Assembly: GCF_000143415.4 (NCBI RefSeq)
Contig: NW_003314319.1
Span: 1,115,683 to 1,179,682, forward strand
Direction of reading: 5' to 3'
Length of the DNA stretch: 64,000 nucleotides
Source of the DNA: Selaginella moellendorffii
Lineage: Eukaryota > Plantae > Lycopodiophyta
The translations under genes and the position numbers were made by a program. Of the stretch, positions 26,150-56,803 are shown piece by piece (position 1 is the stretch's first letter; every line of letters starts with the position of its first letter). Under the pieces are notes generated by a model that ran no database searches, had not been told where the DNA came from, and was given only the letters and a program-made list of their open reading frames with translations.

Positions 26150-26349
26150 TATGAGACATAAAATCCCTAGGCCCCAAAGTGGAGTCGAAAGGGTGCCACG
26201 TGGTAGTAGCCAAAGTGAAAGCTAAATGAGCATAACTCGTTTGGACTAAAAGCTCTAACTTGAAAAGTCGAGAGGGGGAGTGGAACTCCAATGAAGGGCT
26301 CAAGGAACAAGCATGAAGCGAGCCATGAATGAGTCTCTAAAAAAGGGGA

Positions 26350-28330: not shown

Positions 28331-30403
28331 GACACTTCCACGTGTCATGTGTTGGTCCTTTTTGGGTCCCTTTTTGGAGCCTCGCTTATTGCTTGCTTCG
28401 TGCTCATTCCTCGAGCACTTGGTTGGGAGTTCCACTCCCGCTCTTAACATTTCAAGTCGGAGCTTTTGGTACAAATGTGTTACGCTTGTTTTGCTCTCGC
28501 TTCGGCCACTACCACGTGGCACCCTTCTGGCTCCACTTTGGGGCCTAGGGATTTTGTGTCTCACAACTCCACCACCCATAGACGAAGTTTGATGTCCTCA
28601 TCGAATGGTAAACCATTTTGTAAAGTAACACTCGCATGTGTTACCATTTCCATCCTTGGCACTCAGCCAATATTTGTCTATGGTTTGACATTGAAGGCTC
28701 ACCATGCCTTATCCATCCTCTAAGGAGTATATGTAAGGAACCAACTCGCCAAGGTGTCGTAGGCTAAAGGAACCCCGAAAGCATGACCAAAATGATAAAG
28801 AGTTCATCGGATGGGACCGAGTCTGAGATCGAGTCCAAGACCGACTTTGAGATCGAGTTCGAGATAGAGTCCGGAATCGAGCCCGAGGCCGACTCGGAGA
28901 CCGAGTTCGAGACGGAGTCCGAGATCCGAAATCGGGTCCGAGACCGAGTCCGAGGTCGAGTCCGAGGTCGGGTCCAAGATCGGGTCCAAGATCGAGTCCG
29001 AGATCAAGTCCGAGACCGAATCCGAAGTCGGATCCGAGATCAAGTCCGAGATCGAGCCAGAAACTAAGTCCGAGTACTAATACGGGTCAAGGGGTGAAAG
29101 CCCAAAGCGTGTGTTTCCCGGGCGGGGGGGGGGGGGGGGGGGGGGGTTCCAAAAGTATAGTAGGGATAGTGAGGTCCAGGAAGTAGGAACCAATTTTGAG
29201 GGAACTCTCCAGTGGGGCTTCCAAACTGACTTGAGGTTGGGACTGGGACCGAGGGGCATTGGGTGGGAGTGAGCATGGACTTGGTTGGTGCCGGAGGGGC
29301 CATCCAAGGAAGTGCTTAAGAGCAGCTCCCACTCCTAAAAGGGAAACCGATTGCGGTGCTCCCGGCTCAGGTGGAGTGGTGCCCCACTTGAGTACCATGT
29401 GGCTCATTGGTCCTTGCCCTTCCTATGGGCTTGGGCCTTCCTTCGGGATGGAAGTGGGGGGGTAGAGGTACCCATACGGGGCCGTTAGGCCACAGTGTTT
29501 TGCCCTGGCGTCCCGAAGCAAGTGTTGCACCCAAGACTTGGGATTTAGAGGGTCCCATGATCAAGTTTTGTGGTACCAAGGGATGTTATGGGAGATGGCA
29601 AAGGCGGGGCATAAACGAACCAAGGCGGAGACGGAAACTCTGCCAGAGCTGGAGCCTTCGGTTGACAAAAGGCTATGGATGAGGAATCCTTGCATGAGGA
29701 GGACTCCAGTGAGGAAACTTCCAAATAGGAATCCGGTGGCGAGGTGCGGTCGTCCAAGGCTCGATTGATGTTCTAGAAGGACAATTGGCACAGACCAATG
29801 CCCTGCTAGAGACTCTCGTACGCAAGCTAAAGCATGACGAGAAGCGGAAGAAAAAGCGAAAGACTGCGGATGCTGGCAGCGCAGAAGGTGCGGACCCTTC
29901 GGTAGGGACTGAGGCAGAACCAAACAAGGTTGAACAGACCGAAGTGGAATTAGTCCCTCAAAAGCTCTATTTCGTTAAAGTGGGAATTGTCATTATCCCA
30001 CTTGTAAAATAAGGTTTCCAAACCTTTATATAGTATATAAATATAACAAAATTCAACTGCATTGAGGCACATGCCATTTTGTTTTAAATAAGGAAATGTC
30101 TACTCAATCACTTCTCCTCCCCCTGCCACTGCTTCACCTCTCTCTTCTCCTTGTCATCGTCGTCCAATTTCTTTCCATCCTTTTAATATTGGCTCAGTTG
30201 CTCCGAGTCTAGGTGGAGCCCAAGTCCCCATTCAATCTTTACTTTCCCCTTATTAATAAAACAACTTTGTAGACTTCCAATAACATGCTGTAACACTTCT
30301 AGTATAATGCAAATCCTCTCAAAGAATTGTCTTTTAATATTAATACAATGGCATGGAACCCCATGCCATAATAAGTTACATTTTTAAATAAATACATGCC
30401 ATC

Positions 30404-31288
30404 TCAGACTGTTATTTTTTGCCTCCAACGCCTATACAATAATCTTGGAATTTCATCACTCTCCACACTATCAGGATTTAAACCCAATAGTAATGCCATC
30501 TCTTCTCTAATACGTCCATGCTCATGTTCAGTGGTCGAAGAACCCATCCAGTTGAGCAGATTATGGAGATGCGGATAGTGCTTGGCTAGACAATATACAT
30601 GCCATAAATGATGACTGGTGTCTGTCCAATCAAATGGCTTCTGATATACCATTCCATCTGCCATTTGGTTGATTTCTGCAGCCACCTCCTGGACTGGCCG
30701 GTTCTCTATCACCATCGCTCCAAGCCGTTTTGCAAGGTCCCCCAGAACATACGGTTTCTTCTCCCTAGTTTCCATACTGCAAGAGATGGGGTGCACTGCA
30801 TATGTGTGCGTGTTTGCTGCAGTTTTAATCGGCGAGTCATCGATGATGAGGATTTCACTTGACCTAGCAGTCCGGTTCATCACTACAGCCTCTAGCTTGA
30901 CGAAGATGGGCTTGCTACCCCTCACATGGACCATAGTCAAGCAATCCTCTTGCGTTAGGAGAAAGTCAAATGGTAATATTACTCGCGTCTGATCGTGCAT
31001 CATCTGTAGCAACGTTAATGCATTGTGGCGCATCATGGATGTCCAAACTCCCAATTGCAAATTGAACCCGGCCCTTTGTTTTAAGTGTCGCATGGTCATT
31101 ATTAGATCCCGCAGTTTCTCCCCTGTGATTAATGTGAATCTGTCTCTTTTGACCAACTTGCGACCGCAGGCTTTGGAGGGTGCAGTGACATTCGAGGACG
31201 AGCCACGCTCATGGGAGAAAAGGACACCGTTCAGATCAAAAACGATACAGTACCTTCGCCGTGACTCTGAAATGAAATGCGTCAGCAT
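30404..31288 (-). CDS. FCP1/NIF-like HAD-superfamily phosphatase domain protein (transposon cargo, copy 1)
   Basis: CIVFDLNGVLF (plant NIF-type DLNG variant of motif I), LGVWTSMMRHN, ILIIDDSPIK; 294-aa open frame. Confidence 0.72.
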   Translation of the reverse strand: MLTHFISESRRRYCIVFDLNGVLFSHERGSSSNVTAPSKACGRKLVKRDRFTLITGEKLRDLIMTMRHLKQRAGFNLQLGVWTSMMRHNALTLLQMMHDQTRVILPFDFLLTQEDCLTMVHVRGSKPIFVKLEAVVMNRTARSSEILIIDDSPIKTAANTHTYAVHPISCSMETREKKPYVLGDLAKRLGAMVIENRPVQEVAAEINQMADGMVYQKPFDWTDTSHHLWHVYCLAKHYPHLHNLLNWMGSSTTEHEHGRIREEMALLLGLNPDSVESDEIPRLLYRRWRQKITV

Positions 31289-31899
31289 AAAAAATGGTAC
31301 AAGTCAATTTTACCATCTACAATATTAGCGAATGGTGCTCCCGATAGTCGTTGAGAGGGTTTTGGTCGAGGAAACGTGAAGGGCGGAAATACTCTCCTCT
31401 GCAATGTGGGGTCAATCGCATCCGATGGCGTGTGGGCACATGCCATTTCAGCTGTAGACTCTAGTATAACTGGCTCAATAGTGGCATGGGGCGGTTCCGA
31501 TGGCGTGTGATCACATGCCATTTCAGCTGGTGCCTCCATTGGCAAAGTGGACATGACCGAACAGGCAGCAGAGGCGGTGTAGGGAGGTTCCAACGGCGCG
31601 TAGTCAGACGATTGGGCACACGTTGAATCCATTGGAAATGAGGATACGACCGGCTCGGCGGCTGGGGCGGCCTCATGCGGGTCCAATGGCGCCTGGTCAC
31701 CGTCAGTTGGATACGTGGACAAGATTGACTCAGTGGTATAGGCAGCATCAAGTGGAGCATGGTCAGCTTGCTTGGCGTTGATATGGATAGTAGCCTCCAC
31801 TAGCTTTGATGACTCTTGCAGGCAAGTAGAGTCCACTGGCGGATTCATATGCATGTCCAAATATCTCCCTTCGATTGAGATGGTATCCTCCCTACTGGC

Positions 31900-33180
31900 T
31901 ACTAAAAACAAACTCATTAGCACATTGAATCGACTATACTGTATTTACCATCAACTGCTATTGAGGAACTAGGACCGATATCACTTGGGCGCACTGCTGA
32001 TTCTGAAGGATTGGACATACGTTTCGACCCTTGCTTGGCACTATCCTTCCTCGACACTAAAGGCTAGAGTTTGTATCTTAATTCAACTGAATAATCTCTA
32101 CTTACCATTTGCTCTGCGACCTACATGGACAATGTTAGAAATGGTAAAAGGTTAGGAATGGATGTACTATTATTTACCTGATGGTTTGTCTTGTATGACC
32201 TTCCTCCGCTGCTCTTTGGCCACCTCAGGCTGGCCATCGTCGTCATCATCGTCGTCGTTGTTATTCTGATCGTCACCATTGTGAGGACCATCCAAGTCCT
32301 CTTCGTCCTCCTCTTCTTTGTCCTCCTCTTTGTCCTTCTGCTCTTCCTGCTCATTATCTTTCTCTGGCTCCTCATCCCCCTCCTGCATTTCTTCCATAGG
32401 CTGCTCAGGCTGGATGGCTTGTTCTTCCAGGACCATCTTGGAAAAATCATCTGGCCGAGTCTCCATCTCAAAATACAAGACATCCATAGCCTGTTTTAGT
32501 GCGTGACCTAGGACCGTATCCTCACCCGACTGTCTTAACATGGTTTCTGCATGTTCTTGCACCCTTCGAAGACGACGAGATGAGAAAAACGTGGCTCTGA
32601 CTTGAAAAGCATCCCTCATCCATTGTACCTCTCCATTGAGATTGGGGAAGGGGAGTCCGCCATAGGAATCTGAGTCAGGAGGTGGTGATTGGCTGCTTTC
32701 ACTCAGCCCTTGATCTGCAATGAATGGCATGAGCACACATGCCATAACCGCGAAGCATTACCTATCATCTTTTCGTTGCCCTTCTTCCTTTTCGAATCAA
32801 ACGCCTCTGATCCCGACGACTGTCCAACGTGCTTTCGCTTTTTATGACCACTGTCAGTTTGAGCTTGGCTGGTGCTTGCCTGTTTTGCCTTTGAAGAAGT
32901 GTCTCCTGCAAGGAATGGCATGAGACCACACGCCATTGCAAATATAATTTGTACCTCCTTTTTTTCTATTGCTTGTCTGTTTGTCCTTCTTCGACGCGCC
33001 ACCAATGCACTTTTCAGTCCTCGTGTCTGAATATTCACAACGATCTATAATCAAAATGGCGTGAGGCCTCACGTGACCTTACCTTGTGCAGGTTGTGAGC
33101 TCGGCCCAACATGGGTATCTTCAACAGTAGCTGTTAACGCCGTTTCAGCATCTGGGGGTGGCCACGCTCCTGCATACAGA
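31900..33180 (-). CDS. Multi-exon acidic/low-complexity segment with short GT-AG introns (may join the ParB-like and NIF parts)
   Basis: Introns at 33027-33082, 32906-32954, 32715-32761 and others; D/E-rich exon at 32178-32714. Exon joining was not fully verified. Confidence 0.5.
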
Positions 33181-33218
33181 GCTTGTGAGATAACATTTAA
33201 ACTTAAAGTGCGTACTCA

Positions 33219-35792
33219 CCAGGTTCGTAGAGAAGATACTGTTTTTCTTTGGCAACTATAATTATATGCTCCATTGAAGTCACCTCTTCAATGGAGTTTG
33301 TCACCACAACACACGGGACACCCTTGAGTAGTGCGGCTCGAAAGAATAGTCTGCCGCAGTTGTACTTGACAACGCATTTGCCCTTGGAGTCGGAAGCAGG
33401 TGACCCACCCGCTATTGCGTTGAAGACCCAGCTGAGCATTTCCCATGCTGCACCTAGAGCTTTCTCTGGATTCGAAAGCTCCATAGCCGTCTTCAGTTCC
33501 TCAGGCACGGGTAAATTGACCTCCCTTAGATCAATTCGATCGGCCTTGTTGAACGAAGCTAGGAAGTCACTCCAGTCCCACTCTGCTGCAGGACCAATAA
33601 CAAGGGCGAGTGTGAAGATGTCGACATTCGTCGGTATCTTCTTCTTAGCCATTATCCCATGGATCTCCCGCATCTCCTTGCCTTTCAACCGAGCCTTCAC
33701 CTCGTTCAAGGCCTTCCAGAACTTGTGATAGGATTCGGAGTCGTAGATCATATAGTGGACTGAAGATTCCACCTCCGCAAGTCCCACCATTAAGTCAATG
33801 ATGGAGCTGACTTCGTCTGCATGAGTGATCTCCTTGTTTGTGAAGTCCATCACACAAAAGATGTTCTTGACCTGCTCATCTCCGCGGGAAACGATGCTCC
33901 TCCACCTTTGATCCTCATCCAAATTCACGTATACCCGGTAAGGTTCTCGATAGGCCTCTGCTGCGGGGTCGAGCTGTTTCTGAAGCCGGCGGTCGACATC
34001 CCTCTTAATGAAATTTGGATACTGATCCAACTTCTCAGCTTTACTTTTCGTGGCATCCCGCAGCAGATCAATGAACTTGGGGGCCCCCTTCACGTAGTCG
34101 TCGATGTCTTCATTTGACAACTTCAGCTCTTCCATCATCTCTTGCGTGGTGTCGATGCTCACCCTCTCCACGGCCACTTGCTCGAAGATCCAATCCTTCA
34201 ATAGCGCACGAGCTCTCAGAGTCGTGCACAAGTCCTCGTATGTCACAATATGGCCGGGAGTCATTTTGGTCTTGTTGAAGACTACCTCACCACGTAGAAG
34301 AGCATTAGCCATTGTCAGAAGGTCGTCGTCGTCTAGAGACCGCGAGAAACGCAAGGCGTTGAGCTTCAAATCATTAAGCTTCCGGCCGTCCTCCACACCC
34401 ATTGAGTTTAGCAACTCCCCATCATGGTACCTCTTCAGCACATCTACCCATTTGTCAAAAACAACTTTTGTCACGAGTAGAATGTTATGGATGTTGAGTG
34501 TGTCATTGACCCCCAGTGTTTTCGAGAGAAGACTCGAGAATTCCTGCAATGGAAATGGCGTGAGGCCACATGCTATGCCACATGCAACGAGGCTTACCTG
34601 CCAGGCGCTAGTTGCTAGTGCACGTCCTTGTCCTGGTTTTTGTGGCTTCTTTAGTTGAACCCAGAGCTTCCGTGTTCGTGCCAATGTCTCATGCAGACCC
34701 GATTTGTAGCACGTTTCTTGCTTGACATTCTGCACGTGGGAGATGTATATGATAGATCAGAGGGGCGAGTTGCCTTTTATCAGGCGGACAACTCTTGTCT
34801 TGAAGACTTTCTTCACCTCCTCGCCCACCATAATATCCACAACTATCTCTTGCATCGCCAAGCTAGAATGCTGCCCGAAGACGGCATAGAACCGGATGTT
34901 CTGATCGTCCAACACCTTCCTATTGATCAAGTCTGGAAACCTCGTCTCGCCCTTCATTGTTCGGTAGTAGGGGATCACGTCTGCGATGTCGGGTGTTACT
35001 GGACTTGCCAGCATCTTCTGCTTCAGTTTCTCCACCCACTCATCAGATACTAGCATGTGGTTGTATTTGCTTTGGATGTCGATACGGCTCACGTCGATTG
35101 TATATACTTTGTTGGAATAGTAACAAGTACTATTATCTGCGACGATTTTTGCTGCCTCTTCTTGCTCTTTCTGCTCTTTGCAGCTCTTCTTTTTGGTGGG
35201 TGTAGTGTTCGAACCCGAGGCAATGGCATCACCGAGTAGCTTCTTTTTGGAGCAGCAGAGTCGGACGTCGGCTTGAGCTTGACCACCCTTTTCTGCTTCG
35301 GGGTAGTTTCCAAATCGACCCCCTTCCCCTTCGCTTCGCAAACTGGAGGCACTCTCAACGGCTCAATGTTGGAATATAGTTTTTGAACATCGCCGTAGGT
35401 GAGGTCCGTGGATTCCATGTGATCTTCATAGACCCGCAGCGTCTTTGAAATTGTGAGCCTCCTGGACAACCTCTCCCTAGCTCCCTCTAGGAATTCCTGC
35501 CGCTGCCCCCCTCTGGGAAGCCGCTAGGATGTGCAAGGTGGATCTTGAAGGCGGACGCTGTCTCTACCACAAGTGCCAATCCATATTCTTGCATGGAACT
35601 GTATGGAGTGTCTGTCACTTGGATGAGGATCCCCATGCATTCTTTTCTCCCACCATCTGTGTTGTACAGCCTCAGATCCTCGCCTTCCATCCCGAAAGTC
35701 CAACTGGTGAGCTCCTCCCCTTTCTCTGCATCCACATTGACAGTGGCTGGAAGAAGAACGCAATTCCTCGCCTGTTCAGAAATGCACAACAA
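33219..35792 (-). pseudogene. Cargo gene: putative ParB/Srx-like domain plus degenerate Rossmann/DNA-methyltransferase-like C-terminus (copy 1)
   Basis: Long ancestral frame (frameshifts near 35245 and 35497; TGA at 34757). Contains YTIDVSRIDI..VSDEWVEKLKQKM..FYAV(F/S)GQHSSLAMQEI (ParB-like) and CVV(K/E)YNCG(R/G)LFFRAALLKGVPCV (resembles the MTase SAM-binding region). Further short exons run down to ~31900. Confidence 0.5.
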
Positions 35793-37946
35793 TTAGAGCT
35801 GACAGATGAAAAGTTAGCAGCTGGAAATAACATGAGGCCACACGCCATTCACCACTGCATCAGATGTCTTGAGGCTGCATCCTAAGATGGCGTGAGGCTA
35901 CACGCCATCTGTAACCGGACTGCACTCGAGAGCCCAATCGGTGCATGCCAATGTTGCTACTGAATGGCATGTGGCCTCATGCCATTTTCTACTTGGCCTA
36001 AAAGACTTGCCATTTGAAGCCGAATGGAGGTGTGACAATCGAGGCCGGACTCGCTGGCGAATGTGCACTGTGTGTGCAGCGGATCGTAGCAACAAGGCTA
36101 CTCTGCCACTTACAGTTGGAGAGTGGCGCTGAAATCTCCCGGGACGCCAAGTGGGCTTCGTGTGAGTGGCGGAGTGGGCGGCGGAGTTGGCGGCAAAGTT
36201 ACAAACTGGGTGTGTCTTGAAGTGGATGCCGATGCACACGAGCGCGATGCGAGCGCGAGTGTGATGCAAGCGCGAGTGGACGCCGATGCACACGAGAAAC
36301 CTGTAGAGAAGGTAGATGAGCGGGAATGTGAGCGTGATCGCGAGTGGGAGCGCGATGTGAGCGCGAGTACAATGCAAAACCTAACCTCATATGCGCGAAA
36401 TGTCACGACGGTTGGTAATCCCGCAACGTCATCATTCCTCGGACTTGGGCGCCACCATTAATTTCTGGATCGCCGCGCGCATGCATGCACATGAAATCCA
36501 AAAGAAATCCGCAACGTCATCATTCCTCAGACTGCATGCACGCGAAATCCAAAAGAAAGATCATGATTGGGATATCATTTAATACCCTCGCTATATTTAT
36601 ACCATGCATGATTGGATATTCCAAAGCATCTTGTATTTCCAAAAATGCCAGATGTTCAGCTAAATAAAGAATGGTATACAATGTCCTTCTTGATGACCCT
36701 GCAAAGAAGCATCTCGATCGGACACCACATGAGACCACACGAGCCTTACAATGTTTCAGGGGCATTTGCCATAGATCCGACCGTTATTTTGCTCCAAGAT
36801 TCTACAGTTTGGTGTGCATTGACCTTTCCATCGACACTGCAAAGGGACATCAAAATCAGATGTGGGATCACAAGAAACCAACTTCACTAACTCTGGTTTC
36901 ACCAAGATCTACGTAAGGAGTTATGAAATGAAAGGACCCTCTCTATTAAAATGTGTTTATGGTCCTGACATATCAAAGGATTTTGCATCAAGTTCTGTAT
37001 TTGCATGTTTATCAAGCTACTGAATTGCTAAACCCTAAACCCTAAACATGTGGCAAATGCTGCGTGAAGAAAGATGCCCTTTCTGGGCAAATGCTGTAAG
37101 AGGCAGATGCCGAGCAGTTACACGGCGAATAATCTTGGCGCGGATCGCTGATATGGCATGGCAAAGTTCGAATCACTGACATGGCACAGCTGGATCGAGG
37201 CAAGGACATGATGTGACAAAGTTCAACCTCCGACAGCAAAGTCTAGAAGCTACTCAGTTTGAAATTTGTCAGAGGAATCATAAGATCTGGTTTGTCAGAG
37301 GATTTGATGTGACGTTCAAGCGTGTGTTATTTTTGAATTCTCGAACTCATTCCTAGGTCTATCATTTTTGTGCGCCGTGTTCTTGGTTCTGCTGAGCGCA
37401 GTGAGCGCTGCTTGTGTAAGCGGCGTTGTGGGCTGTGGTTTATGCGTCTACGAGCGGTTCCGGCATTGCGAGCGCCATTGCGAGCGGCAGTTTATGCGAG
37501 TGGCAGTTTGTGCGAGCGGCGCTACGAGCAGTTGCGGTGTTGCGAGCGGCGCTACGAGTAGTTGCGGTGTTGCGAGCGGCACTGTCTTTGGTGTGGCTAC
37601 CGCTTCCTCTTGATATTCGGCACTTGTGCTTCCTGGTATGTTCACCATGGAATGGCTTAGGACCACATTTAGAAATGGCATGAGGCCACATGCCATCTTG
37701 GGCCCTTGCAATTTCATGGCTAGCGTATTGTCATGTATGTTTTTATTTGCCTGCAGCTATGTGTATATCAAGATGGCATGAGGCCTCATGCCAATTTTGT
37801 AAATGCGAAATTTCACGTGGGTGTCAATAGCATGTTTGAATAATGGCATATGGCCTCATGCTATTGAGGTTGTTTGGTATGTTATGATTTAGGCCATTCT
37901 CCAATCATTTTTTGTATGGTCTTAACTTCTTTTCTGCACTTTCAGA

Positions 37947-40772
37947 ATGGCCTCCGCAAGTGCGACGCATGTTCCCTCCGTGGATCTTAAGAACCGTGCT
38001 ACATGGATTCAGGCAAAGGTGTTTCTAAACAACCCCAAGGGGGAGGTGGTAGCTGAGGGCTTAGCCATAGTTGTCGATCCAAGAGATGCGGTTGCTAATC
38101 AAGAATTGGGCTAGGATAATATTGGAGTTGCGATTTTAGAGGTTGTTGACACAGAAGAAAATAGTCTGACTATTGGAAGCATTGTGTGGTGGAAATTGAG
38201 GCACTTAGTGTTTGAGAATGTGAAGGATTCACAATCAAACACCACTACAACTGATGACAGAACATCTCTTCATGGGAAAAGAAAGTACACCTTCCTAAAG
38301 CGCAGCCAAAGGGATCTGAGCAACGAACCGAAAAGGCAGAAAATGGCGATGGAGGTTCGAATGGTCTCAACAGTTGCTTGTTGCAAGAGGAGGTGCTGTC
38401 AACATGCTGATTGGGATGCTATTGAAGAGGAGAGAGCAAGATACAAGACATTGTCCTGGAAGGCAGCTCGCAATTTTGTGTATGAGGCATTACGGTCATC
38501 TGTTGATGCTTCAGAACATCAGGTGGGGGGCATGGTCTTCTAGAGGGGTTTGGTCTGCATGAAGGCATAGAGAATCATTTATGGAGTCCCTCGAACCACA
38601 TTCTACAGAATCAAAACTGAGTTCAAGGAACAAAGGGTTCAACAGGCAGTCCATGGGAACGACGGTACGCACAAAACCAGGGGTCATGTTGTATATGGAG
38701 AGGCAATCTTCAAGAGGTTTGTTGAGACATGTAGCGAGCAGCAACCACATAAAACCCGCCTCTTGGAAGATGGAACACGAGACACCCAACGAGTTCTCCC
38801 TTCCATGTATACCAAGGGGGCCATATTGGAAGATGTGAATCGGGAACTCCAGAGTAATGGCTACAGGAAGCTGAGCCAATCTAGATTTAGTAGATTGTGG
38901 AGCAACAGGTTCAGGGATGTGAGTATAGGAAAGTACTCCAGCTTTTCAAAGTGTGACGAGTGCACTGCTATCAAAATGGCTTTGTCGAAGAATTTTTGCA
39001 GCGCTCAAGAGCGAGAGACGTTGGTTAGAAGGCGGCTCGACCACAACATCGAGCAGAGAAGCTGCAGGACTGCATATTATCATAACAGGATTCTCTCCAT
39101 GGAGAGACCTGACTCTTACCTCTGCATCATCCATGACAAAATGGACCAAAAAAAGACGTGCTTACCTCGACTCAATCCTGCCCCCAAGGCAATCTCTTCA
39201 TCCATGCAGCTGCCTGTGTCTCTGTTTGGCATAATCGCTCATGGGCATGGTGCCCATAACTATGGTAACTTCTTTGTACCTCTATGGGGTGGCGGGGGTG
39301 CAAACATGATGATTGCGTCCCTAGCAAAACACTTAAGGTCTCTGCAAAGTGCGCAGACTAAGCTGAACGGCCAACCCTTGCATAAGGCCCTTGTCGATCG
39401 AACCCCATACAGGGTTCAGCTGGAGGAGGAGCAAAGGCTTGCAGTATCGCGTGGGGCCCCATGCCATCCCAGTGAATATGTTGGCCGTCAGATTGTAGGG
39501 TTATCATGTGAGGCCTCATGCCATTCCGACGAGGCTGGTCGCCCGGTGAATGCACCGCCTCATCCAAACGAAGTAGAATCTCAAGGAAGTTCTTGTGGCC
39601 GATGTGGCCTTCCACCCCATTTTCTGCTCCAAACAAACAATGCTGGCAGTGAGAACAAAAACATGTACGTCTTTGCGTACTTGGCGATGCTTGTTGCCAA
39701 AGGCATATTTGAAACGGTTACACTTGGCTTTCTTATGGTTGGGCACACTCATGAAAACGTCGATGCCATGTTCAGTCACCTGGCAGAGTCCCTCCGGCGA
39801 TCCAATGTCCTCACCCTCCCACAACTCTACGATGAATTCCAAAATTGCATCAAAGGCACTGTTGAAGCTGCACTTGTGACAGAGGTTCCAGACTTTAAGG
39901 GGTTTGTAAGAGGCTACATCAGGGACGGATCTGAAACACTGATTGGCCACTCCAAGCCTCTTCAGTTTCATTTCAGCATGCGTGACGGTGCTCCAGTGAT
40001 GAGGTACAAGATGAGAGAATGGGACACAGTGTGGCTGCCAGTGGACGGCATTGAACTCTTCAAGAGAGATCCCATAACTGGGGAACCTATGATTCCTCAG
40101 GGTTCCCCACGGCCGATGCACCCGGATGGACTCAAAGACCAGGAAAGTATAGTGGCCGGGATTAGACAGCATATTGCCTTCTGGAAGAGGGGGTTGGTGT
40201 TTGGTGGAGAATCCTATTTTCAGAGGTGCAAGCCTTTGCTCGAATACTGGGAGAAGATTATATCTGCTATCCAAAATGGGCCGGTTGTATATGAAGAATT
40301 GGAAGAGTCCTTTTGGCCAGAACCCAGAGCACCAGATAGTAGCGGAACAATGTCCTCTGGAAATGCAGTGACAGATAATGATGTTGAGGATCACTATTGT
40401 GGGCAGAGGAACAAGAAGCCGGATTCAGCATTCAATCCAGTACAGGTCCGCAAAGGAATGGTCGTGCTTGTCAGACCCAGTAATAAAAAACAAATGATAT
40501 GGGTGGGGCGCTGCATCACGGATGCAGAGGAGGACGTGGAAACTAACTCCTTCAATGTAACTGTGGAGTGGTTCAAGCCAAGTTCCGGATATACGAAGGA
40601 TTGCCTAAAAAAGAGATAGGTGCTGAATCCAAGGGATCCCAGCATGAGCATATCGGTGGATAATGTTGTGCATGGTTGGATGCGGAAGCAGAGTGCCACC
40701 ATCACCTTGCCAGACCATGCAAGAGATGCAGCAAGAGCATTCATAACCCGGGTTCAAGGTGAGATTCATTAA
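37947..40772 (+). pseudogene. Sola-type transposase, copy 1 (one frame with premature TAG stops at 38112, 38541, 38568, 40617)
   Basis: ATG follows a ttcag acceptor. Motifs VCMKA*RIIYGV, CDEC, HDKMDQ, QT(N)NAGSENKN and FLMVGHTHE(N)VDAMFS are typical of Sola-like DDD transposases. Confidence 0.82.
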
Positions 40773-43700
40773 TATTCCTTTACTAAGTTTCTAATGTATT
40801 TTATTTCAAGGTGAACAATCCGAATCTAAATCAGAGGAGGCGTGATGGCATGTGGCCTTACACCATTCCTAGGTTAGATGATACAAATAACAAGTATAAA
40901 TTCTTAGTTGTTCTAGCAAATCTTACTTAAAGTTCAAGGTGAACAAGCCGAATATGAATTCATCGGATTGTTATAACAAATTGCGAGGTGATGGCATGAG
41001 GCGATACGCCATTTGAGAGTGGTAGCCATTCCTATATGAGGTGAGTGAAATATTTATTAGAAATACCTCATTCAATTGTGCACTTCTAAGTCTTGGTCCA
41101 CTCAGTACTGTTTGCATGTTTTTATTTTAATTCTTTCTCTAAAATGTTATTTAGCATGTGGCTTCATGCCATTGCTCTCCACAATCATGCATTGAATTTT
41201 TCTATCCTTGCATAATACTTCTCCATATATATAGCATGTGTACACATGTGATATGGTTCATTAGGCCTGATATAGTGTGTGAGGTAAAACAAAGATGATG
41301 TGACATATGCATTTACCAATCACACGTGCATAAATCTAATAATATGGCGTGTGGCCCATATTAATGGCACATAAACCCATATTGTGGGCTTACGTGCTTT
41401 ATGTACCATCATTCCCTTGCAGCGTGTGTGTTGGTTTCCTTTTATAACACAACAAACTCCATATTTTAGGGTGAAGAGCGTTCTCATGGCAAGCACAAAA
41501 TCTGTAAGTGAGGCAGAAAAGGAGATAGAGAAGGAAATAGGTGAAGATGTAGAATATATAAGTCTTCCAAACTCCCCGTACTATACTCCAAGTGATCATT
41601 TTTCTGAACAAACGGCAATATTAACAACTATTGAGAACGCCCCAGTAATACCAGTCTGAGAAATAGAATGGCATGTGCCCTCAGGCCTTTTACTAAATCA
41701 CCTTTGAAAGAAATGCAAGCCTCTATGTCGTAAAAAAAAGGTACTAGAGAAATTCCTTAATAATATGAATGTTATTTAGTTTCATGAAAATACACTAAGG
41801 GTCAAATGAGTTAAATGACTTCTCCAGACTAGCAATGCCTCTTGCTACACCTTCACAATTAGATTCGTTAGAAAAAGATAACATTGAATAATATCTAAAT
41901 GTTCTCACCATTAAGTTATATGTCTGGCTAATAGGAATGACGTTTATCTTGGAAAGCTCACCACACGCTCAATGAACAAACAAATAGTGTGTGTGCGCAT
42001 GCCATCGCTCTTCTTTAGCTTCAGATTCAGCTTGTTCACCTTGACAATGAGATTTATTATACAACCAGATGGACTCAGTCTAGACACAAAGTCACCGCGC
42101 TAGTCACCATGCCCCAGATATGTCTAGCCCCTGGACAAAAAACATATAATTTCACGTCATTTTCAAATACTTGAAAATTTGTATCTAGTCCCATTTTACT
42201 GAATAAATCCCACTTTAACGAAATAGAGCTTTCAGGCAGTTCCCAAGTACAAACCAAAACCCCCACCGGTCTTCAAGGGAGTGAACGACTATAAGGTGGT
42301 GGAGGATTGGTTTTATGATATGGAGGACTACTTCTGAGCGTTGCGATTACCAAGCTCGGAGAAGGTCCCATGTGCAAAACCATACTTGGCAGATAATGCC
42401 AAGTCTTGGTGGAAAACGACAGAGGCCAACGAAGGACCGGTGGCCACTTGGGACATGATGAAGGCGAGGATCCGCGTGACTTACGTTCCTCCGAATGCTA
42501 CTCTGCATCTAAGAGACGAGTTGAGTAGGCTGAAGCAGACCGGAACCATTCAGGAGTATGTGAATGGGTTTATGGCAAAGAGGATACGTGTCACGGACAT
42601 GGGAGATATGGATGCGTTCCATGCCTTCATATCGGGCTTGCACACCTGGGCTCGCGGCGAGGTGATGGTTTGGAACCTGACCAATTACAAAGAAGCGTTG
42701 GATGTAGCCATCAAGGTGCATTTCAACGATAATCTACGAAAGGGGAACACGACGGGGTCAGGGTCCACGTTTAGCAAAGAGGCCAAACCAAGGGGGACAT
42801 TTAGCAAGGGGAAATTCAAGAAGAGTTTCTCTAAGAATGAGTCCTCGGGGTTTCGGAAAGGCAAATCTGGTGGCCAGCAAGAAAATACGTGGGGGAGTCA
42901 AGCAAAAAGAGACAAACCCATGGATAAAAAGGTCAAGTCATATAGCAACGTGGGAAACAACATATGCTACAATTGCGGTGAAGCGGGACACTTCTCGAGA
43001 GAATGTCCCTACCCGAAGAAGGCCAGAGCCAATATGGCCATTAAGTCGGGTGAAGTCCAAAATAAGGTATGTGATCTAGTCCTTAACTCAAAGTTACTCA
43101 TTACACGAGCAACTTTGGTAGAGAGTCGTTCGCGACATCTACTAGCCCTTCGAGGGAAGCTCGGAAGTAGCTTTGTTAAGATCCTTATTGACACGGGTGC
43201 TTCAGATAATTTTGTGGCTGCAGACATAGTCCGGCAAGCCGGACTAACGGTGCAGCGGCTGGGCGAACCAAGGACTATAGAGTTTGTTCAAGGTAGCCAA
43301 CGCACTGATGAGGTACTTCGACAAGCGAGAGTCGAAGTAGGGACTTGGGAAGTGGACATGGATTTCACCGTGTTGGACATGGCGGGATTTGATGTGATCT
43401 TCGGGATGGATTGGTTCAATCGGTTCGTGGTAGCCCTACATGGACAAGGTAGGAACCTTGTGGTACTAGCGAATGCCCAAGGAAGAAGATCCAGGGTGGA
43501 GGCCCAGAATCTAAAGGTAGGGCAATGCAAGGCCAAAGACTCGTGCTTAAACTTGGTGTCCACAAGAGGACAACTCACTAAAGGGACTAAGGCTGCATTC
43601 TTGTGCTTACTCTCGGTAGGGAGTGACAAAAAGACAGGAACGGAAGAAGTACCTTTAGTGATCCAGCGGGTGTTGGACCAATTCCGGGATACCATGCCAG

Positions 43701-48600: not shown

Positions 48601-51421
48601 AAGGAGTGGTTCCTCAATTTGGGCATGCTCACCTTATAATCCCACACACTGGGATTACTGTTGCTACTTATGGGCCTCCATATGTCCATCACTAGCCTTG
48701 CCAAAATTCCATTTTTGGCTTTGTCCAAATCGGGTAGACGGATTCCTCCTGTCTCCACAACCTTGGACGTTTGGATAGCACCTCCTATCCATCATTCGCT
48801 AGGGACTTTATCCCTTGGGCCTTATCTATTGCCCTCGTGACACTAAACACCACCTCTTGGTGTTCTAGAGTGTTTAGGTGTCCCAATGATGGCCTCCGTG
48901 ACAATAAGCATTTCCTTTTATGACATTGACTTACTATGTTGCAACATAAGCAATTTTTCCCTCATAAGGGTATATCTAACTTTTTTATCCCAATAAAAGG
49001 TTTTAGGTAGTTACCTTCTACCAATTTAACTAATTATTTTGCATCTTCTGCTTAGTTGCCTCATAGTCGTCAAGTCCTACAACTCATTGTTGTTGCTTCC
49101 ACACTCCATCATTATTTGGGTCACCACACTTTAATCACATGCCTTCTAACTTAGGCTATGCCATTCCCATTTCCATTAGGATTCCTTTGGAAGGGGTTCT
49201 CATAAACCCGCCAACTTAACCTCAAGGCAGCATGCCTTGGCACATTCGATGTCTCCACACCATCGACTCTACGAGCCTACCTATATGACACTTCTTACTT
49301 GTGTCTAAGTCTTTTTGCCAAGACTAATATGGTTGTCTCTTATGCCAATTATCCATTAGCATTGCACCATAGAGTCCACGCACAACTTTGTGTCAAAGTT
49401 GTTTTCTTCTGGGAAACCCTTTCCCACGACTTTAGCATGGCACCTTCTGCCATCAATGAGATACCTACTGTTTTCATACTTGGATCTTAAGATCCTCCCC
49501 ATCCTTCATGGGGCACCACACACCTCAATCTAAATGTTTTTACCAATCCTTTAGGATCATCCTTTGACTCTACTTGAGTCATCTAGCATTTTCGGACTTT
49601 GCCAATCCAATGACCCATAAGGTCCTATTTTTGAGGTGCCGCACATTGGAATACAACTTCATGTATTCATGTCCTTCTCCTAAGGACCATCTTTGCAAGT
49701 GTCACTCTAACACTTTATTATTTTCCGTTCTCTGTGGGCTACCTTTGCCCCTTTGTAAGCGACTAATTTTTCTATTCTACTTTAGTCACTTAACCACACC
49801 TCCGACCACTTGGAGGAGTCTCATTCACAACCTCCATAAGTCCAACTCAGGACTTGGGGCTTGCTAGCCCCGAGAATGGCATCCATGCCACTCAACCTTA
49901 GCACTTGGTCCAAGTGCTCCACGTGTCCGATCCCATGATCGACACCCCAAGGTACCACCGACGTATCAGCCCGTTACGCTAAGGCCATGCCCATTTACCT
50001 TGGTCACACTGGTGGTCCAACACCACATGCATTCCAATCCCGTCTCTCAAAGACTGGGTCATCCGTCCATGAGTGATCATCCTAAATCCACTCGTTAACA
50101 TCCTTAAGATGCCTATAGACATGGGGAATAGCCTTCCCCAATATCTCTGTTCCAGTCCCCACCAAGTCCCTTTCTGTCCTTGGCTGTGTTCGCCAACACT
50201 GCTACTGGATCAAGGCCCACTGGCCCGACCACTAAGTCCCACTATCCTCTAGGACTTCCTCACTGTGTGACTGTGTCCTTGGTCACCACACCAGAGGGCT
50301 ACCCCTCTTCCTTTCCACAGTCTGGGACTTCGGGACACCATTTCAGAACATCGTGGCCCTACGTGGGCCTTATGGTTACTCTCCCCACCTTCCGCCTTTG
50401 GGTGCTCTAGCCATGGGCTTAGAGCGAGGTTCCGTTGAGCCACGCCAGGTATCCAAGTAGGTAGTGCCACCCACACTTGGACTGGGAGCATCGGCCAGTC
50501 GATCTCCCGGGGGAACTAGAGCCGGCTCTTGAACACTTCACCAAGCTACCCCGCTTGTCGGTCCGTATTCACTCTAGTCTTGGACTTCCCAGTGGTCGGT
50601 TCATCACCCAACACTAGGTATGGCCTTCCTGGACCAAACTGGCCCTTCCTGGGCCAAACTGGCCCTTCCTGGCCAAACTGGCTCCACTGGGCTCCAACCC
50701 CCACACTCTCCCTACTATACTTTTGGAACCCCCCGCAGCCCCCCCCCCCTGGGGGACGATTGCTTTGGGCTTTCACCCAACTGCCTGTATTAGTATTCGG
50801 ACTCGGACTCGGGCTCGAACTCGGACTCGGACTCGGTCTCGGTCCCGGTTTCGGACTCAGACTCGGTCTCGGCCTTGGTCTCGGTCTCGGTTTCGGGTCC
50901 ATCTCGGACTCCATCTCGGGTCCATCTCGGACTCCATCTCGGGTTCATCTCGGACTCCATCTCGGACTCCATCTTGGACAAGCTCTATTTTGTTAAAGTG
51001 GGAATTGTCATTATCCCATTTGTAAAATAAGGTTTCCAAACCTTTATATAGTATATAAATATAACAAAATTCAACTGCATTGAGGCACATGCCATTTTAT
51101 TTTAAACAAGGAAATGTCTACTCAATCACTTCTCCTCCCCCTGCCACTGCTTCACCTCTCTCTTCTCCTTGTCATCGTCGTCCAATTTCTTTCCATCCTT
51201 TTAATATTGGCTCAGTTGCTCCGAGTCTAGGTGGAGCCCAAGTCCCCATTCAATCTTTACTTTCCCCTTATTAATAAAAAAACTTCGTAAACTTCCAATA
51301 ACATGCTGTAACACTTCTAGTATAATGCAAATCCTCTCAAAGAATTGTCTTTTAATATTAATACAATGGCATGGAACCCCATGCCATAATAAGTTACATT
51401 TTTAAATAAATACATGCCATC

Positions 51422-52306
51422 TTAGACTGTTATTTTTTGCCTCCAACGCCTATACAATAATCTTGGAATTTCATCACTCTCCACACTATCAGGATTTAAA
51501 CCCAATAGTAATGCCATCTCTTCTCTAATACGTCCACGCTCATGTTCAGTGGTCGAAGAACCCATCCGGTTGAGCAGATTATGGAGATGTGGATAGTGCT
51601 TGGCTAGACAATATACATGCCATAAATGATGATTGGTGTCTGTCCGATCAAATGGCTTCTGATATACCATTCCATCTGCCATTTGGTTGATTTCTGCAGC
51701 CACCTCCTGGACTGGCCGGTTCTCTATCACCATCGCTTCAAGCCGTTTTGCAAGGTCCCCCAGAACATACGGTTTCTTCTCCCTAGTTTTCATACTGCAA
51801 GAGATGGGGTGCACTGCATATGTGTGCGTGTTCGCTGCAGTTTTAATCAGCGAGTCATCGATGATGAGGATTTCACTTGACCTAGCAGTCCGGTTCATCA
51901 CTACAGCCTCTAGCTTGACGAAGATGGGCTTGCTACCCCTCACATGGACCATAGTCAAGCAATCCTCCTACGTTAGGAGAAAGTCAAATGGTAATATTAC
52001 TCGCGTCTGATCGTGCATCATCTGTAGCAACGTTAATGCATTGTGGCGCATCATGGATGTCCAAACTCCCAATTGCAAATTGAACCCGGCCCTCTGTTTT
52101 AAGTGTCGCATGGTCATTATTAGATCCCGCAGTTTCTCCCCTGTGATTAATGTGAATCTGTCTCTTTTGACCAACTTGCGACTGCAGGCTTTGGAGGGTG
52201 CAGTGAGATTCAAGGACGAGCCACGCTCATGGGAGAAAAGGACACCGTTCAGATCAAAAACGATACAGTACCTTCGCCGTGACTCTGAAATGAAATGTGT
52301 CAGCAT
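51422..52306 (-). pseudogene. FCP1/NIF-like phosphatase, copy 2 (premature TAG at 51968)
   Basis: Same sequence as copy 1, split into 112-aa and 178-aa ORFs by one stop. Confidence 0.72.
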
Positions 52307-54245
52307 AAAAAATGGTACAAGTCAATTTTACCATCTACAATATTAGCGAATGGTGCTCCTGATGGTCGTTCAGAGGGTTTTGGTCGAGGAAACGTGAAGG
52401 GTGGAAATACTCTCCTCTGCAATGTGGGGTCAATCGCATCCGATGGCGTGTGGGCACATGCCATTTCAGCTGTAGACTCTGGTACAACTGGCTCAACAGT
52501 GGCATGGGGTGGTTCCGATGGCGTGTGATCACACGCCATTTCAGCTGGTGCCTCCGTTGGCAAAGTGGACATGACCGAACAGGCAGCAGGGGCAGTGTAG
52601 GGAGGTTCCAACGGCGCGTAGTCAGACGATTGGGCACACGTTGGAAATGAGGATACGACCGGCTCGGCGGCTGGGGCGGCCTCATGCGGGTCCAATGGCG
52701 CCTGGTCACCGTCAGTTGGATACGTGGACAAGATTGACTCAGTGGTATGGGTAGCATCAAGTGGAGCGTGGTCAGCTTGCTTGGCGTTGATATGGATAGT
52801 AACCTCCACCAGCTCTGATGACTCTTGCAGGCAAGTAGAGTCCACTGGCGGATCCATATGCATGTCCAAATATCTCTCTTCGATTGAGATGGTATCCTCC
52901 CTACTGGCTACTAAAAACAAACTCATTAGCACATTGAATCGACTATACTGTATTTACCATCAACTGCTATTGAGGAACTAGGACTGATATCACTTGGGCG
53001 CACTGCTGATTCTGAAGGATTGGACATACGTTTCGACCCTTGCTTGGCACTATCCTTCCTCGACACTAAAGGCTAGAGTTTGTATCTTAATTCAATTGAA
53101 TAATCTCTACTTACCATTTCTTCTGCGACCTACATGGACAATGTTAGAAATGGTAAAAGGTTAGGAATGGATGTACTATTATTTACCTGATGGTTTGTCT
53201 TGTATGACCTTCCTCCGCTGCTCTTTGGCCACCTCAGGCTGGCCATCGTCGTCATCATCGTCATCGTCGTTATTGTGATCGTCACCATTGTGAGGACCAT
53301 CCAAGTCCTCTTTGTCCTCCTCTTCTTCGTCCTCCTCTTCTTCGTCCTCCTCTTCTTTGTCCTCCTCTTCGTCCTTCTGCTCTTCCTGCTCATTATCTTT
53401 CTCTGGCTCCTCATCCCCCTCCTGCATTTCTTCCATAGGCTGCTCAGGCTGGATGGCTTGTTTTTCCAGGACCATCTTGGGAAAATCATCTGGCCGAGTC
53501 TCCATTTCAAAATACAAGACATCCATAGCCTGTTTTAGTGCGTGACCTAGGACCGTATCCTCACCCGACTGTCTTAACATGGTTTCTGCATGTTCTTGCA
53601 CCCTTCGAAGACAACGAGATGAGAAAAATGTGGCCCTGACTTGAAAAGCATCCCTCATCCATTGTACCTCTCCATTGAGATTGGGGAAGGGGAGTCCGCC
53701 ATAGGAATCTGAGTAAGAAGGTGGTGACTGGCTCCTTTCACTCAGCCCTTGATCTGCAATGAATGGCATGAGCACACACGCCATAACCGCGAGGCATTAC
53801 CTATCATCTTTTCGTTGCCCTTCTTCCTTTTCGAATCAAACGCCTCTGATCCCGACGACTGTCCAACGTGCTTTCGCTTTTTATGACCACTGTCAGTTTG
53901 AGCTTGGCTGGTGCTTGCCTGTTTTGCCTTTGAAGAAGTGTCTCCTGCAAGGAATGGCATGAGACCACACGCCATTGCAAATATAATTTGTACCTCCTTT
54001 TTTCCTATTGCTTGTCTGTTTGTCCTTCTTCGACGCGCCACCAGTGCGCTTTTCAGTCCTCGTGTCTGAATATTCACAACGATCTATAATCAAAATGGCG
54101 TGAGGCCTCACGTGACCTTACCTTGTGCAGGTTGTGAGCTCGGCCTAACATCAGTAGCTGTTAACGCCGTTTCAGCATCTGGGGGTGGCCACGCTCCTGC
54201 ATACAAAGCTTGTGAGATAACATTTAAACTTAAAGTGCGTACTCA

Positions 54246-56803
54246 CCAGGTTCATAGAGAAGATACTGTTTTTCTTTGGCAACTGTAATTATATGCTCCA
54301 TTGAAGTCACCTCTTCAATGGAGTTTGTCACCGCAACACACGGGACACCCTTGAGTAGTGCGGCTCGAAAGAATAGTCCGCCACAGTTGTACTCGACAAC
54401 GCATTTGCCCTTGGAGTCACCCGCTATTGCGTTGAAGACCCAGCTGAGCATTTCCCATGCTGCACCTGGAGCTTTCTTTGGATTCGAAAGCTCCATAGCC
54501 GTCTTCAGTTCCTCAGGCACGGGTAAATTGATCTCCCTCAGATCAATTCGATCGGCCTTGTTGAACGAAGCTGGGAAGTCACTCCAGTCCCACTCTGTCA
54601 CAGGACCAATAACAAGGGCGAGTGTGAAGATGCGGACATTCGTCGGTATCTTCTTCTTAGCCATTATCCCATGGATCTCCCGCATCTCCTTGCCTTTCAA
54701 CCGAGCCTTCACCTCGTTCAAGGCCTTCCAGAACTTGTGATAGGATTCGGAGATCATATAGTGGACTGAAGATTCCACCTCCGCAAGTCCCACCATTAAG
54801 TCAATGATGGAGCTGACTTCGTCTGCATGAGTGATCTCCTTGTTTGTGAAGTCCATCACACAAAAGATGTTCTTGACCTGCTCATCTCCGCAGGAAACGA
54901 TGCTCCTCCACCTCTGATCCTCATCCGAATTCACGTATACCCGGTAAGGTTCTCGATAGGCCTCTGTTGCGGGGTCGAGCTGTTTCTGAAGCCGGCGGTC
55001 GACATCCCTCTTAATGAAATTTGGATACTAATCCAACTTCTCAGCTTTACTTTTCGTGGCATCCCACAGCAGATCGATGAACTTGGGGGCCCCCTTCACG
55101 TAGTCGTCGATGTCTTCATTTGACAACTTCAGCTCTTCCATCATCTCTTGCGTGGTGTCGATGCTCACCCTCTCCACGGCCACTTGCTCGAAGATCCAAT
55201 CCTTCAATAGCGCACGAGCTCTCAGAGTCGTGCACAAGTCCTCGTATGTCACAATATGGCCGGGAGTCATTTTGGTCTTGTTGAAGACTACCTCACCACG
55301 TAGAAGAGCATTAGCCACTGTCAGAAGGTCGTCGTCGTCTAGAGACCGCAAGAAACGCAAGGCCTTGAGCTTCAAATCATTGGGCTTCCGGCCGTCCTCC
55401 ACACCCATTGAGTTTAGCAACTCCCCATCATGGTACCTCCTCAGCACATCTACCCATTTGTCAAAAACAACTTTTGTCGCGAGTAGAATGTTATGGATGC
55501 TGAGTGTGTCATTGACCCCCAGTGTTTTCGAGAGAAGACTCGAGAATTCCTGCAATGGAAATGGCGTGAGGCCACATGCTATGCCACATGCAACAAGGCT
55601 TACCTGCCAGGCGCTAGTTGCTAGTGCACGTCCTTGTCCTGGTTTTTGTGGCTTCTTCAGTTGAACCCAGAGCTTCTGTGTTCGTGCCAATGTCTCATGC
55701 AGACCCGATTTGTAGCATGTTTCTTGCTTGACATTCTGCGCGTGGGAGATGTATATGATAGATCAGAGGGGCGAGTTGCCTTTTATCAGGCGGACAACTC
55801 TTGTCTTGAAGACTTTCTTCACCTCCTCGCCCACCATAATATCCACAACTATCTGTTGCATCGCCAAGCTAGAATGCTGCCCGGAGATGGCATAGAACCG
55901 GATGTTCTGATCGTCCAACACCTTCCTATTGATCAAGTCTGGAAACCTCGTCTCGCCCTTCATTGTTCGGTAGTAGGGGATCACGTCTGCGATGTCGGGT
56001 GTTACTGGACTTGCCAGCATCTTCTGCTTCAGTTTCTCCACCCACTCATCAGATACTAGCATGTGGTTGTATTTGCTTTGGATGTCGATACGGCTCACGT
56101 CGATTGTATATACTTTGTTGGAATAGTAACAAGTACTATTATCTGCGACGATTTTTGCTGCCTCTTCTTGCTCTTTCTGCTCTTTGCAGCTCTTCTTTTT
56201 GGTGGGTGTAGTGTTCGAACCCGAGGCAATGGCATCACCGAGTAGCTTCTTTTTTGGAGCAGCAGAGTCGGACGTCGGCTTGAGCTTGACCACCCTTTTC
56301 TGCTTCGGGGTAGTTTCCAAATCGACCCCCTTCCCCTTCGCTTCGCAAACTGGAGGCACTCTCAACGGCTCAATGTTGGAATATAGTTTTTGAACATCGC
56401 CATAGGTGAGGTCCGTGGATTCCATGTGATCTTCATAGACCCGCAGCGTCTTTGAAATTGTGGGCCTCCTGGACAACCTCTCCCTAGCTCCCTCTAGGAA
56501 TTCCTCATAGCCGCTGCCCTCCTCCGGGAAGCCGCTAGGATGTGCAAGGTGGATCTTGAAGGCGGACGCTGTCTCTACCACAAGTGCCAGTCCATATTCT
56601 TGCATGGAACTGCATGGAGTGTCTATCACTTGGATGAGGATCCCCATGCATTCTTTTCTCCCATTATCTGTGTTGTACAGCCTCAAATCCTCGCCTTCCA
56701 TCCCGAAAGTCCAACTGGTGAGCTCCTCCCCCTTCTCTGCATCCACATTGACAGTGGCTGGAAGAAGAACGCAATTCCTCGCCTGTTCAGAAATGCACAA
56801 CAA
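54246..56803 (-). pseudogene. Same ParB-like cargo gene, copy 2
   Basis: ORFs 55763-56803, 55028-55690 and 54230-54934 lie in one frame separated by point stops. Confidence 0.5.

Follow-up and report, generated by a model that had tools for sequence, protein, structure and literature searches.

The idea that a transposon carries binding sites for a protein of its own has already been put forward in print for two groups of algal elements, Sola1 and Plavaka, and has been shown experimentally for VANDAL/VANC and Mutator/Spm. In Ectocarpus, the giant Sola1 element Sola1-1_Ec32 carries an opposite-strand ParB-like/DNA-methyltransferase gene whose product is proposed to bind and modify the element's own DNA (PMC12477816). 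Here we describe an element of comparable layout from Selaginella moellendorffii, present twice in a 64,000-nucleotide stretch of contig NW_003314319.1 (the window, to which all positions below refer) and studded with a 22-bp palindrome. Our reading, to which we assign a probability of roughly 0.55, is that these palindromes are the cognate sites of a DNA-binding dimer encoded by the element, more probably the transposase, with a role in self-recognition. Like Sola1-1_Ec32, the window element is large, is bounded by terminal inverted repeats (TIRs) and has an accessory gene on the strand opposite to the transposase; a homologue of its DUF7869-type transposase (P0058) is found in Ectocarpus. 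It differs in that the ParB-like and N4/N6-methyltransferase domains, recognisable in Sola1-1_Ec32, are detected by no profile in the window element, and in that it has a NIF-like open reading frame (ORF). The account of Sola1-1_Ec32 makes no mention of the word palindrome (PMC12477816), and our literature search found no report of arrayed palindromes in DUF7869 or Sola-type elements, nor in the introns of such elements. The initial annotation of this locus knew of no such description for Sola elements; this is only partly true, as the gene of the Ectocarpus Sola1 element, proposed to bind its own DNA, had been published (PMC12477816).

Other systems share parts of this arrangement. In red algae, the Plavaka gene PAG3, which joins ParB-like and 2OG-oxygenase parts, adjoins inverted-repeat arrays, and binding to its own transposon has been proposed (10.1101/2025.02.11.637652). 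The window element likewise has element-specific inverted repeats beside an accessory gene; it differs in superfamily (that of PAG3 is Plavaka/KDZ-type) and in the enzymatic domain, and its sites are dispersed over the whole body and the introns, whereas those of PAG3 form tandem arrays next to the gene. For VANDAL21 of Arabidopsis, sequence-specific binding by VANC21 and the resulting hypomethylation have been shown experimentally (PMC5735166, PMC10398659). The likeness here is a family-specific motif that is enriched in the element's own non-coding DNA and differs between related families; the difference is that VANDAL belongs to the Mutator superfamily and that the sites of the window element are known from sequence alone. 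VANC motifs are about 9 bp long, non-palindromic and often arranged in tandem repeats. Transposases have also been described as sequence-specific activators of their own copies, as for the Mutator and Spm products (10.64898/2026.08.24.746577). The 12-bp motifs of En/Spm TnpA and the subterminal hexamers of Ac resemble the present sites as multiple short cognate motifs distinct from the TIR tip, through which a protein of the element that binds them controls transcription and transposition. They lie in subterminal regions alone, whereas the 22-bp palindromes of the window element spread through 12 kb, introns included. With bacterial ParB/parS the element has in common several palindromic sites of similar size and the logic of a dimeric binder. 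This is a resemblance only, as the element is a chromosomal eukaryotic transposon with no known partition need and no confirmed ParB domain, and no ParA-type ATPase was found among its ORFs of at least 70 aa or in Pfam scans of its main ORFs.

The palindrome, ATGGCRTGWGGCCWCAYGCCAT, occurs at 22 sites in copy 1 of the element (29962-42231) and at 23 sites in copy 2 (50980-63544). These counts come from a scan with the arms only (ATGGCRTG-N6-CAYGCCAT, at most three mismatches), which placed all 45 sites within the two copies and left the remaining ~39 kb of the window empty. The count of at least 20 copies in the initial annotation, and its failure to see a full-length site elsewhere in the window, are thereby borne out. 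With the full consensus and at most three mismatches, 38 matches were counted in the window where 0.01 would be expected, a number that none of 100 shuffles attained; exact 8-mer half-sites fall within the two copies in 68 of 69 cases. The exact 22-mer consensus had no match in the metagenome contig collection. The GGCC centre is conserved even in sites picked by their arms (G10 in 20/22, C13 in 19/22, G11 in 15/22 and C12 in 16/22), and the repeated unit is therefore the full 22-bp palindrome, which a weak A at -1 and a weak T at +1 extend to 24 bp. The centre had first been described as variable, which understates its conservation. The R/Y positions are CpG/TpG alternatives, several of which differ between copies 1 and 2, and an arm changed by CpG decay is left uncompensated in the opposite arm. 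Conserved sequence together with this uncompensated decay argues for read-out by a protein rather than for a hairpin.

The sites in the window are dispersed, with unrelated flanks, no tandem arrangement and no target duplications. They span the whole element, from 95 bp within its left end to ~226 bp short of its right end, and are not merely subterminal, in agreement with the first description. The three extra copy-2 sites listed there (57897, 58135 and 62892) were all recovered, along with weaker extras at 57762 and 58056, and all five sit in segments missing from copy 1 (57722-58195 and 62787-62958). Sites 57762 and 58056 have the same sequence at a distance of 294 bp, a sign that local duplication or deletion may alter the number of sites.

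None of the 22 copy-1 sites falls in conserved coding sequence, though ~56% of the element was classed as such; the chance of this is 0.44^22, or ~1e-8, and ~3e-4 if 10 clusters are taken as the independent units. Between the left end and the NIF-like ORF there are two palindromes (30056..30369; sites 30056, with a degenerate left half, and 30348), and upstream of that ORF a low-complexity, Pro-rich ORF stretch holds two more at a spacing of 75 bp (31425..31521; sites 31425 and 31500). Three palindromes lie directly upstream of the accessory ORF (35827..35985; sites 35827, 35887 and 35964). Another three precede the ATG of the transposase (37675..37864), with sites 37675, 37773 and 37843 located 272, 174 and 104 bp upstream of it. 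Sites 39446 and 39503 belong to a 90-nt in-frame stretch (39444..39533, + strand) that may be a linker or a GT-AG in-frame intron and that, in the alignment with homologues, falls in a variable linker between blocks of the transposase core. Six sites are 3' of the transposase stop (40845..42005; 40845, 40991, 41151, 41231, 41668 and 41984). The four ORF-internal sites (31425, 31500, 39446 and 39503) are thus all in frame and in low-complexity or variable linkers.

The remaining four sites lie in candidate tiny GT-AG introns of 38-54 nt. Three of these introns, of ~47, 49 and 38 nt, are in 32715..33083 (- strand) and hold sites 32724, 32915 and 33056; they were called from the letters and the reading frames alone. 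The fourth is a 54-nt phase-0 intron (34544..34597, - strand) that holds the palindrome at 34555, and P0059, a homologue of the accessory protein, skips exactly these 18 codons. In each of these candidate introns the last letter of the 3' AG comes 9-11 nt after the palindrome, with 7-9 nt in between. At the position of 34544-34597 the P0059 gene (locus L006) also has a phase-0 intron, 69 nt long and free of palindromes, and the intron of the element is therefore older than its palindrome. The palindromes thus entered existing non-coding DNA and did not create it. An 'introner' idea, in which the palindromes made the tiny introns, was rejected for this one checkable intron, as it is shared with the palindrome-free intron of P0059. 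Sites in introns (as candidates) and in intergenic DNA had been claimed and are found; the further claim of sites in coding sequence does not extend to conserved coding sequence.

Related transposase loci carry palindromes of their own. Among the first four readable relatives, L001 has 9 copies of ATTCAACTCGAnTCGAGTTGAAT, L002 26 copies of ATTTAGCTCACnGTGAGCTAAAT, L003 7 copies of ATTTAGCTCGAnTCGAGCTAAAT and L004 22 copies of ACCCTATGGC-N6-GCCATAGGGT, in each case beside the transposase gene. These palindromes are 23-26 bp long (20-26 bp over the related loci as a whole), and in shuffled control sequences recurrence never exceeded 1. After a further 80 loci had been read, 85 transposase-relative loci were put to a strict test, the recurrence of an identical perfect 7+7 dyad within -4 kb to +1.5 kb of the gene. 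Palindromic dyads recurred at least three times in 13/85 loci, against 1/85 for the mirror-repeat control, and at least four times in 9/85 against 0/85. Looser palindrome detectors were dropped: the mirror-repeat control scored about as often with them, because tandem and AT-rich repeats raise it. The palindrome-array trait is therefore real but not universal among the relatives, and many array-negative loci are short contigs or distant partial matches. At the Ectocarpus locus L007, a transposase gene fragment only, no recurrent palindrome was found. As a separate observation, the relatives' palindromes often form part of tandem units of 26, 41, 54 or ~153 bp (those of 26, 54 and ~153 bp at L002 8600-8834 and 13580-13850 and at L004 3085-3934), whereas those of the window family are dispersed. 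Telomere-like arrays of the AAACCCTAA type were also seen a few kb from distant DUF7869 genes at L032, L058, L062, L063 and L071-L073, all of them moss-associated metagenome contigs.

Comparison of these palindromes with the transposases beside them is informative on the probable binder. The clade of the window element, L004 and L010, with transposases 36-59% identical, has an ATGGC/GCCAT core in differing arrangements. In L001-L003, L020, L025 and L059 (transposases 44-56% identical) the core is mostly CTCG(A/G) and the outer arms differ. The palindrome cores thus track the transposase clades. Within L001-L003, whose transposases are 51-56% identical, the 23-bp palindromes share most positions; that related palindromes are kept at ~50% protein identity implies long-term constraint. 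No homologue of the accessory gene was detected in the relative loci by tblastn or with a profile hidden Markov model (HMM) built from its few homologues, and at L004 the DNA upstream of the transposase is taken up by palindrome arrays over 4.6 kb, with no room there for an accessory gene. The initial annotation had asked whether related families carry different palindromes that co-vary with the cargo protein; related transposase loci do carry different ones, and no accessory homologue was detected beside them.

Being private to the element, non-coding, conserved in sequence and different in relatives, the sites look like the cognate-site array of an element-encoded dimeric protein. We infer from these patterns the binding itself, the identity of the binder and the effect of binding. 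A dimer of a sequence-specific protein of the element would bind the 22-bp palindromes. The arrays without a detectable accessory gene, and cores that follow the transposase clades, favour the transposase as the binder, either through its non-catalytic N-terminal part or as a transposase-derived product; the accessory protein is a weaker candidate. The site triplets 100-300 bp upstream of both divergent genes favour transcriptional self-regulation as the main role, so that binding would serve autoregulation or the anti-silencing of the element's own transcription, in the manner of VANC or of the transposase-derived regulators of Mutator/Spm; in addition, the scattered sites may serve to draw the element together for transposition. 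The dimeric element protein of the initial annotation accordingly keeps its place on the strength of the private motif, its conserved sequence, its non-coding placement and the different palindromes in relatives, but the cargo protein was not confirmed as that binder.

Several observations weigh against this model of a transposase-derived dimer on its own sites. Most of the 85 loci have no clear array, so that the trait is clade-limited or often lies beyond short contigs, and shared descent alone yields some correlation between clades and palindromes. With 27% identity to its best homologue, the accessory gene is fast-evolving and could escape detection in distant relatives, and in the closest relatives, L010 and L011, the upstream DNA measures less than 2 kb. 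The N-terminus of the transposase yielded no identifiable DNA-binding domain. The 24-bp TIRs contain no palindrome half-site, and a transposase that bound the palindromes would therefore need a second specificity. The accessory side of the element (30350-36340) had no real coverage in three raw RNA-seq runs from the same species, and sample X1 of this check looks like DNA. Finally, a comparison of site conservation with other DNA, suggested with the initial annotation, revealed no difference between copies 1 and 2: the sites differ at 10/435 positions (2.3%) and other DNA at 251/11265 (2.2%; Fisher p 0.87). The sites thus evolve like neutral DNA between the copies, the outcome to be expected of dead insertions; this comparison is uninformative on function, because both copies are dead and decayed and their differences are dominated by CpG transitions (83% transitions, 39% at CpG).

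Another protein of the element could read the palindromes. In this explanation, which we hold to be less likely, the accessory protein, ParB-like, methyltransferase (MTase)-like or phosphatase-like, loads on them as ParB does on parS and marks, protects or condenses the element. Its gene is large, common to both copies and divergent from the transposase, the palindromes are densest in and around it (introns included), and language-model features put its N-terminal piece near the DUF3723 and ParB_N clusters. The algal precedents point the same way, as the Ectocarpus Sola1 element has the same layout with a recognisable ParB-like and DNA-methyltransferase gene for which self-binding is proposed (PMC12477816), and the ParB-like PAG3 genes of red-algal Plavaka adjoin inverted-repeat arrays (10.1101/2025.02.11.637652). 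What makes us doubt it is that HMM libraries, PDB sequences and fold searches (with poor models) lend no support to ParB or MTase domains, that the relatives' arrays adjoin transposase genes without a detectable accessory homologue, and that the host-like homologue P0059 (L006) has no palindromes around it. A host transcription factor, recruited to the sites as enhancer or promoter modules, would account for the triplets directly upstream of both genes, and the half-site end GCCAT(T) resembles a YY1-type core. The palindromes differ between families, though, and the 39 kb of the window outside the two copies, with its other genes and elements, lacks the motif; a host factor is accordingly the least probable of the readings considered, and we give it very little credence.

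Two further explanations do without a DNA-binding protein, and both seem to us unlikely. The palindromes might act in RNA, as hairpins in introns and untranslated regions (UTRs) that affect splicing, stability or the production of small RNAs. Intact sites fold to an 8-bp hairpin of -10.4 kcal/mol, most sites are in probably transcribed regions, and in the four candidate introns the palindrome near the 3' AG supplies a CTCAY branch-point-like sequence. Against such a role, it is the sequence of arms and centre that is conserved, without compensatory changes; Rfam gave no match, the z-scores of the folds (-2.1 to +0.45) are modest, and a Dicer substrate requires a longer stem than these 8 bp. 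The relatives' arrays are upstream of the transposase gene, often in tandem and in promoter-like DNA, and the intron at 34544-34597 predates its palindrome. Alternatively, the palindromes could be functionless, a by-product of mutation or self-copying (for instance, hairpin-prone repeats that spread by slippage, gene conversion or tiny insertions) that is tolerated only in non-coding DNA. The tandem units of 26, 41, 54 or 153 bp in relatives are in line with this, as are the extra sites that copy 2 gained or kept in a duplicated segment and the lack of constraint between the two copies; it also counts against our own model that the origin and upkeep of 22 alike, dispersed sites with unrelated flanks are unexplained. 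Yet in the window the sites are scattered, their flanks are unrelated and target duplications are absent; a comparable recurrence is not seen for mirror repeats, and related palindromes persist at 51-56% transposase identity, where neutral DNA would be randomised.

The element itself can be described in some detail. Copy 1 (29962..42231) measures 12,270 bp, as delimited by self-BLAST with the termini read directly. Its left TIR (29962..29985, + strand), of 24 bp, is AAGCTCTATTTCGTTAAAGTGGGA, the perfect reverse complement of the 24-bp right TIR (42208..42231, - strand). The right end is corroborated by a third copy from a public run (L005), which is 97% identical and internally deleted and has the same right terminus. 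Copy 1 is flanked by TCAA (29958-29961) and TCAG (42232-42235), which match at 3/4 positions. Copy 2 (50980..63544), with 92-99.6% identity to copy 1, is flanked by a perfect duplication, GGAC at 50976-50979 and 63545-63548; it lacks the segment matching copy-1 38980-39271 and was inserted within an array of a 12-bp satellite. Perfect 24-bp TIRs in copy 1 and target duplications of 4 bp in both copies are features of a Sola element; the latter was reportedly given as a feature of the superfamily by Bao, Jurka and Kapitonov in 2009. The element, a TIR DNA transposon with a DUF7869 transposase, resembles published Sola1 elements in layout.

The transposase gene (37947..40619, + strand) is a single frame of ~890 codons with a DUF7869 core (Pfam E 4e-40). 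Three in-frame stops interrupt it in copy 1, whose conserved acidic blocks also carry D-to-N changes, at QTNNAG and HENVD; the D is retained in copy 2. Alignment with homologues, which are numerous, reveals the conserved acidic blocks HDKMDQ, QxDNCGSENKN and GHTHEDID. Sola-1 and Sola-2 elements are annotated in Ectocarpus (PMC12477816). The assignment of the transposase to Sola is indirect and would rest on DUF7869, the acidic blocks and the Ectocarpus homologue.

As first described, the accessory and NIF-like ORFs run opposite to the transposase, both on the - strand. The main part of the accessory gene (33206..35792, - strand) consists of an N-terminal region and then a 517-codon region in one frame. 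The putatively ParB-like N-terminal piece is 34760-35362 (-), with its copy-2 counterpart at 55763-56803 (-). A TGA at 34757-34759, common to both copies, parts this piece from the 517-codon region; contigs of another public run have G at 34759 (A>G), which makes the codon CGA. Neither ParB nor MTase domains gave a match in Pfam, NCBIfam, PHROGs, PADLOC or PDB sequences, and the N-terminal piece has language-model similarity to DUF3723 (0.95) and ParB_N (0.89). DUF3723 is a conserved accessory gene in the giant Starship elements of fungi (10.1101/2021.12.13.472469), and the likeness may point to a link between the accessory genes of unrelated giant elements. The single-sequence AlphaFold model of the N-terminal, ParB-like piece reached a pLDDT of 33 and is unusable for a fold test. 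The 517-aa model, from a 5-sequence alignment, was poor as well (pLDDT 55), and fold searches with it (Foldseek against PDB, ESM Atlas, VIA-align wide) returned noise only, with best figures of Foldseek E >=0.09, TM <=0.31 and Z <=5.7. A degenerate motif-I-like stretch near the accessory C-terminus was seen by eye only and is clearer in P0059.

A homologue search with the 510-aa and 201-aa accessory pieces found nothing, and an exhaustive search of representatives for the accessory protein gave five weak matches, one of them a spurious RTX protein. P0059 (L006 10001-11425) is an annotated gene of 451 aa, 27% identical to the accessory 510-aa region. Its neighbours are ordinary host genes (ArfGap, VQ, SCAR), with no palindromes and no transposase nearby, and P0059 may therefore be a domesticated or ancestral host copy. 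The ParB-like/MTase-like protein of the initial annotation was not confirmed, with language-model similarity in its favour and neither a profile nor a PDB-sequence match; the labels are still plausible, because the Ectocarpus Sola1 gene has such domains in recognisable form (PMC12477816). In the intergenic region, a 40-bp stretch (36077-36116) is matched by 100-250 RNA-seq reads per run. The flanks of these reads are unrelated to the element, so the signal is not element transcription; it comes from a short fragment common to an abundant RNA made elsewhere.

The second ORF on this side (30407..31303, - strand) is NIF/FCP1-like, of the HAD phosphatase type, with a Pfam NIF score of 23.8 bits (E 4e-5) against a cutoff of 21.8 bits and a weak NCBIfam HAD-IIIC match. 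Its motif I reads DLNGV in both copies, with Asn for the second Asp of DxDx(T/V). The assignment as a NIF-like phosphatase is upheld by the Pfam threshold but not by the catalytic motif.

Other repeats surround the two copies. Arrays of a ~12-bp satellite (TCCATCTCGGAC and variants) occupy 26152-28566, 50797-50979 and 63545-64000 of the window, and the paralogous array at 26933-28566 resembles an uninterrupted copy-2 insertion site. An inverted duplication of 2.3 kb (39-2322 and 20999-23282; 99.5% identity) encloses ~18.7 kb; it may have arisen recently as such, or its arms may be the two ends of a further large element. A pair of repeats with 88.6% identity, one to the left of copy 1 (28732-29588) and one between the copies (46451-47328), belongs to some other repeated element.

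A broader proposition, possible but decidedly tentative, is that a clade of DUF7869 (Sola-type) transposons uses a co-evolving protein-DNA recognition code, in which each family has a private 20-26-bp palindrome read by a transposase-derived module. Families in land plants and associated samples would tag their whole body (promoters, introns and 3' DNA), and the code would let sister families tell self from non-self, for instance in activating their own transcription or in evading silencing. Some families would recruit an added cargo protein with degenerate enzyme-like domains to the tagged DNA. If no element protein binds the sites, they are an odd repeat pattern in a dead transposon; for annotation, the palindrome is a sharp diagnostic of this element family. 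If an element protein does read the palindromes, the family would provide a natural case, and one easy to test, of a transposon whose entire non-coding DNA is labelled by the element itself. Introns of transposon genes would then be usable as landing pads without loss of splicing signals, and shifts in specificity would be readable from sequence, as clade cores (ATGGC or CTCG) combined with family-specific outer positions. The logic of VANDAL/VANC and of the Spm/Mutator 'controlling elements' would thereby extend to another superfamily and to early-diverging land plants.

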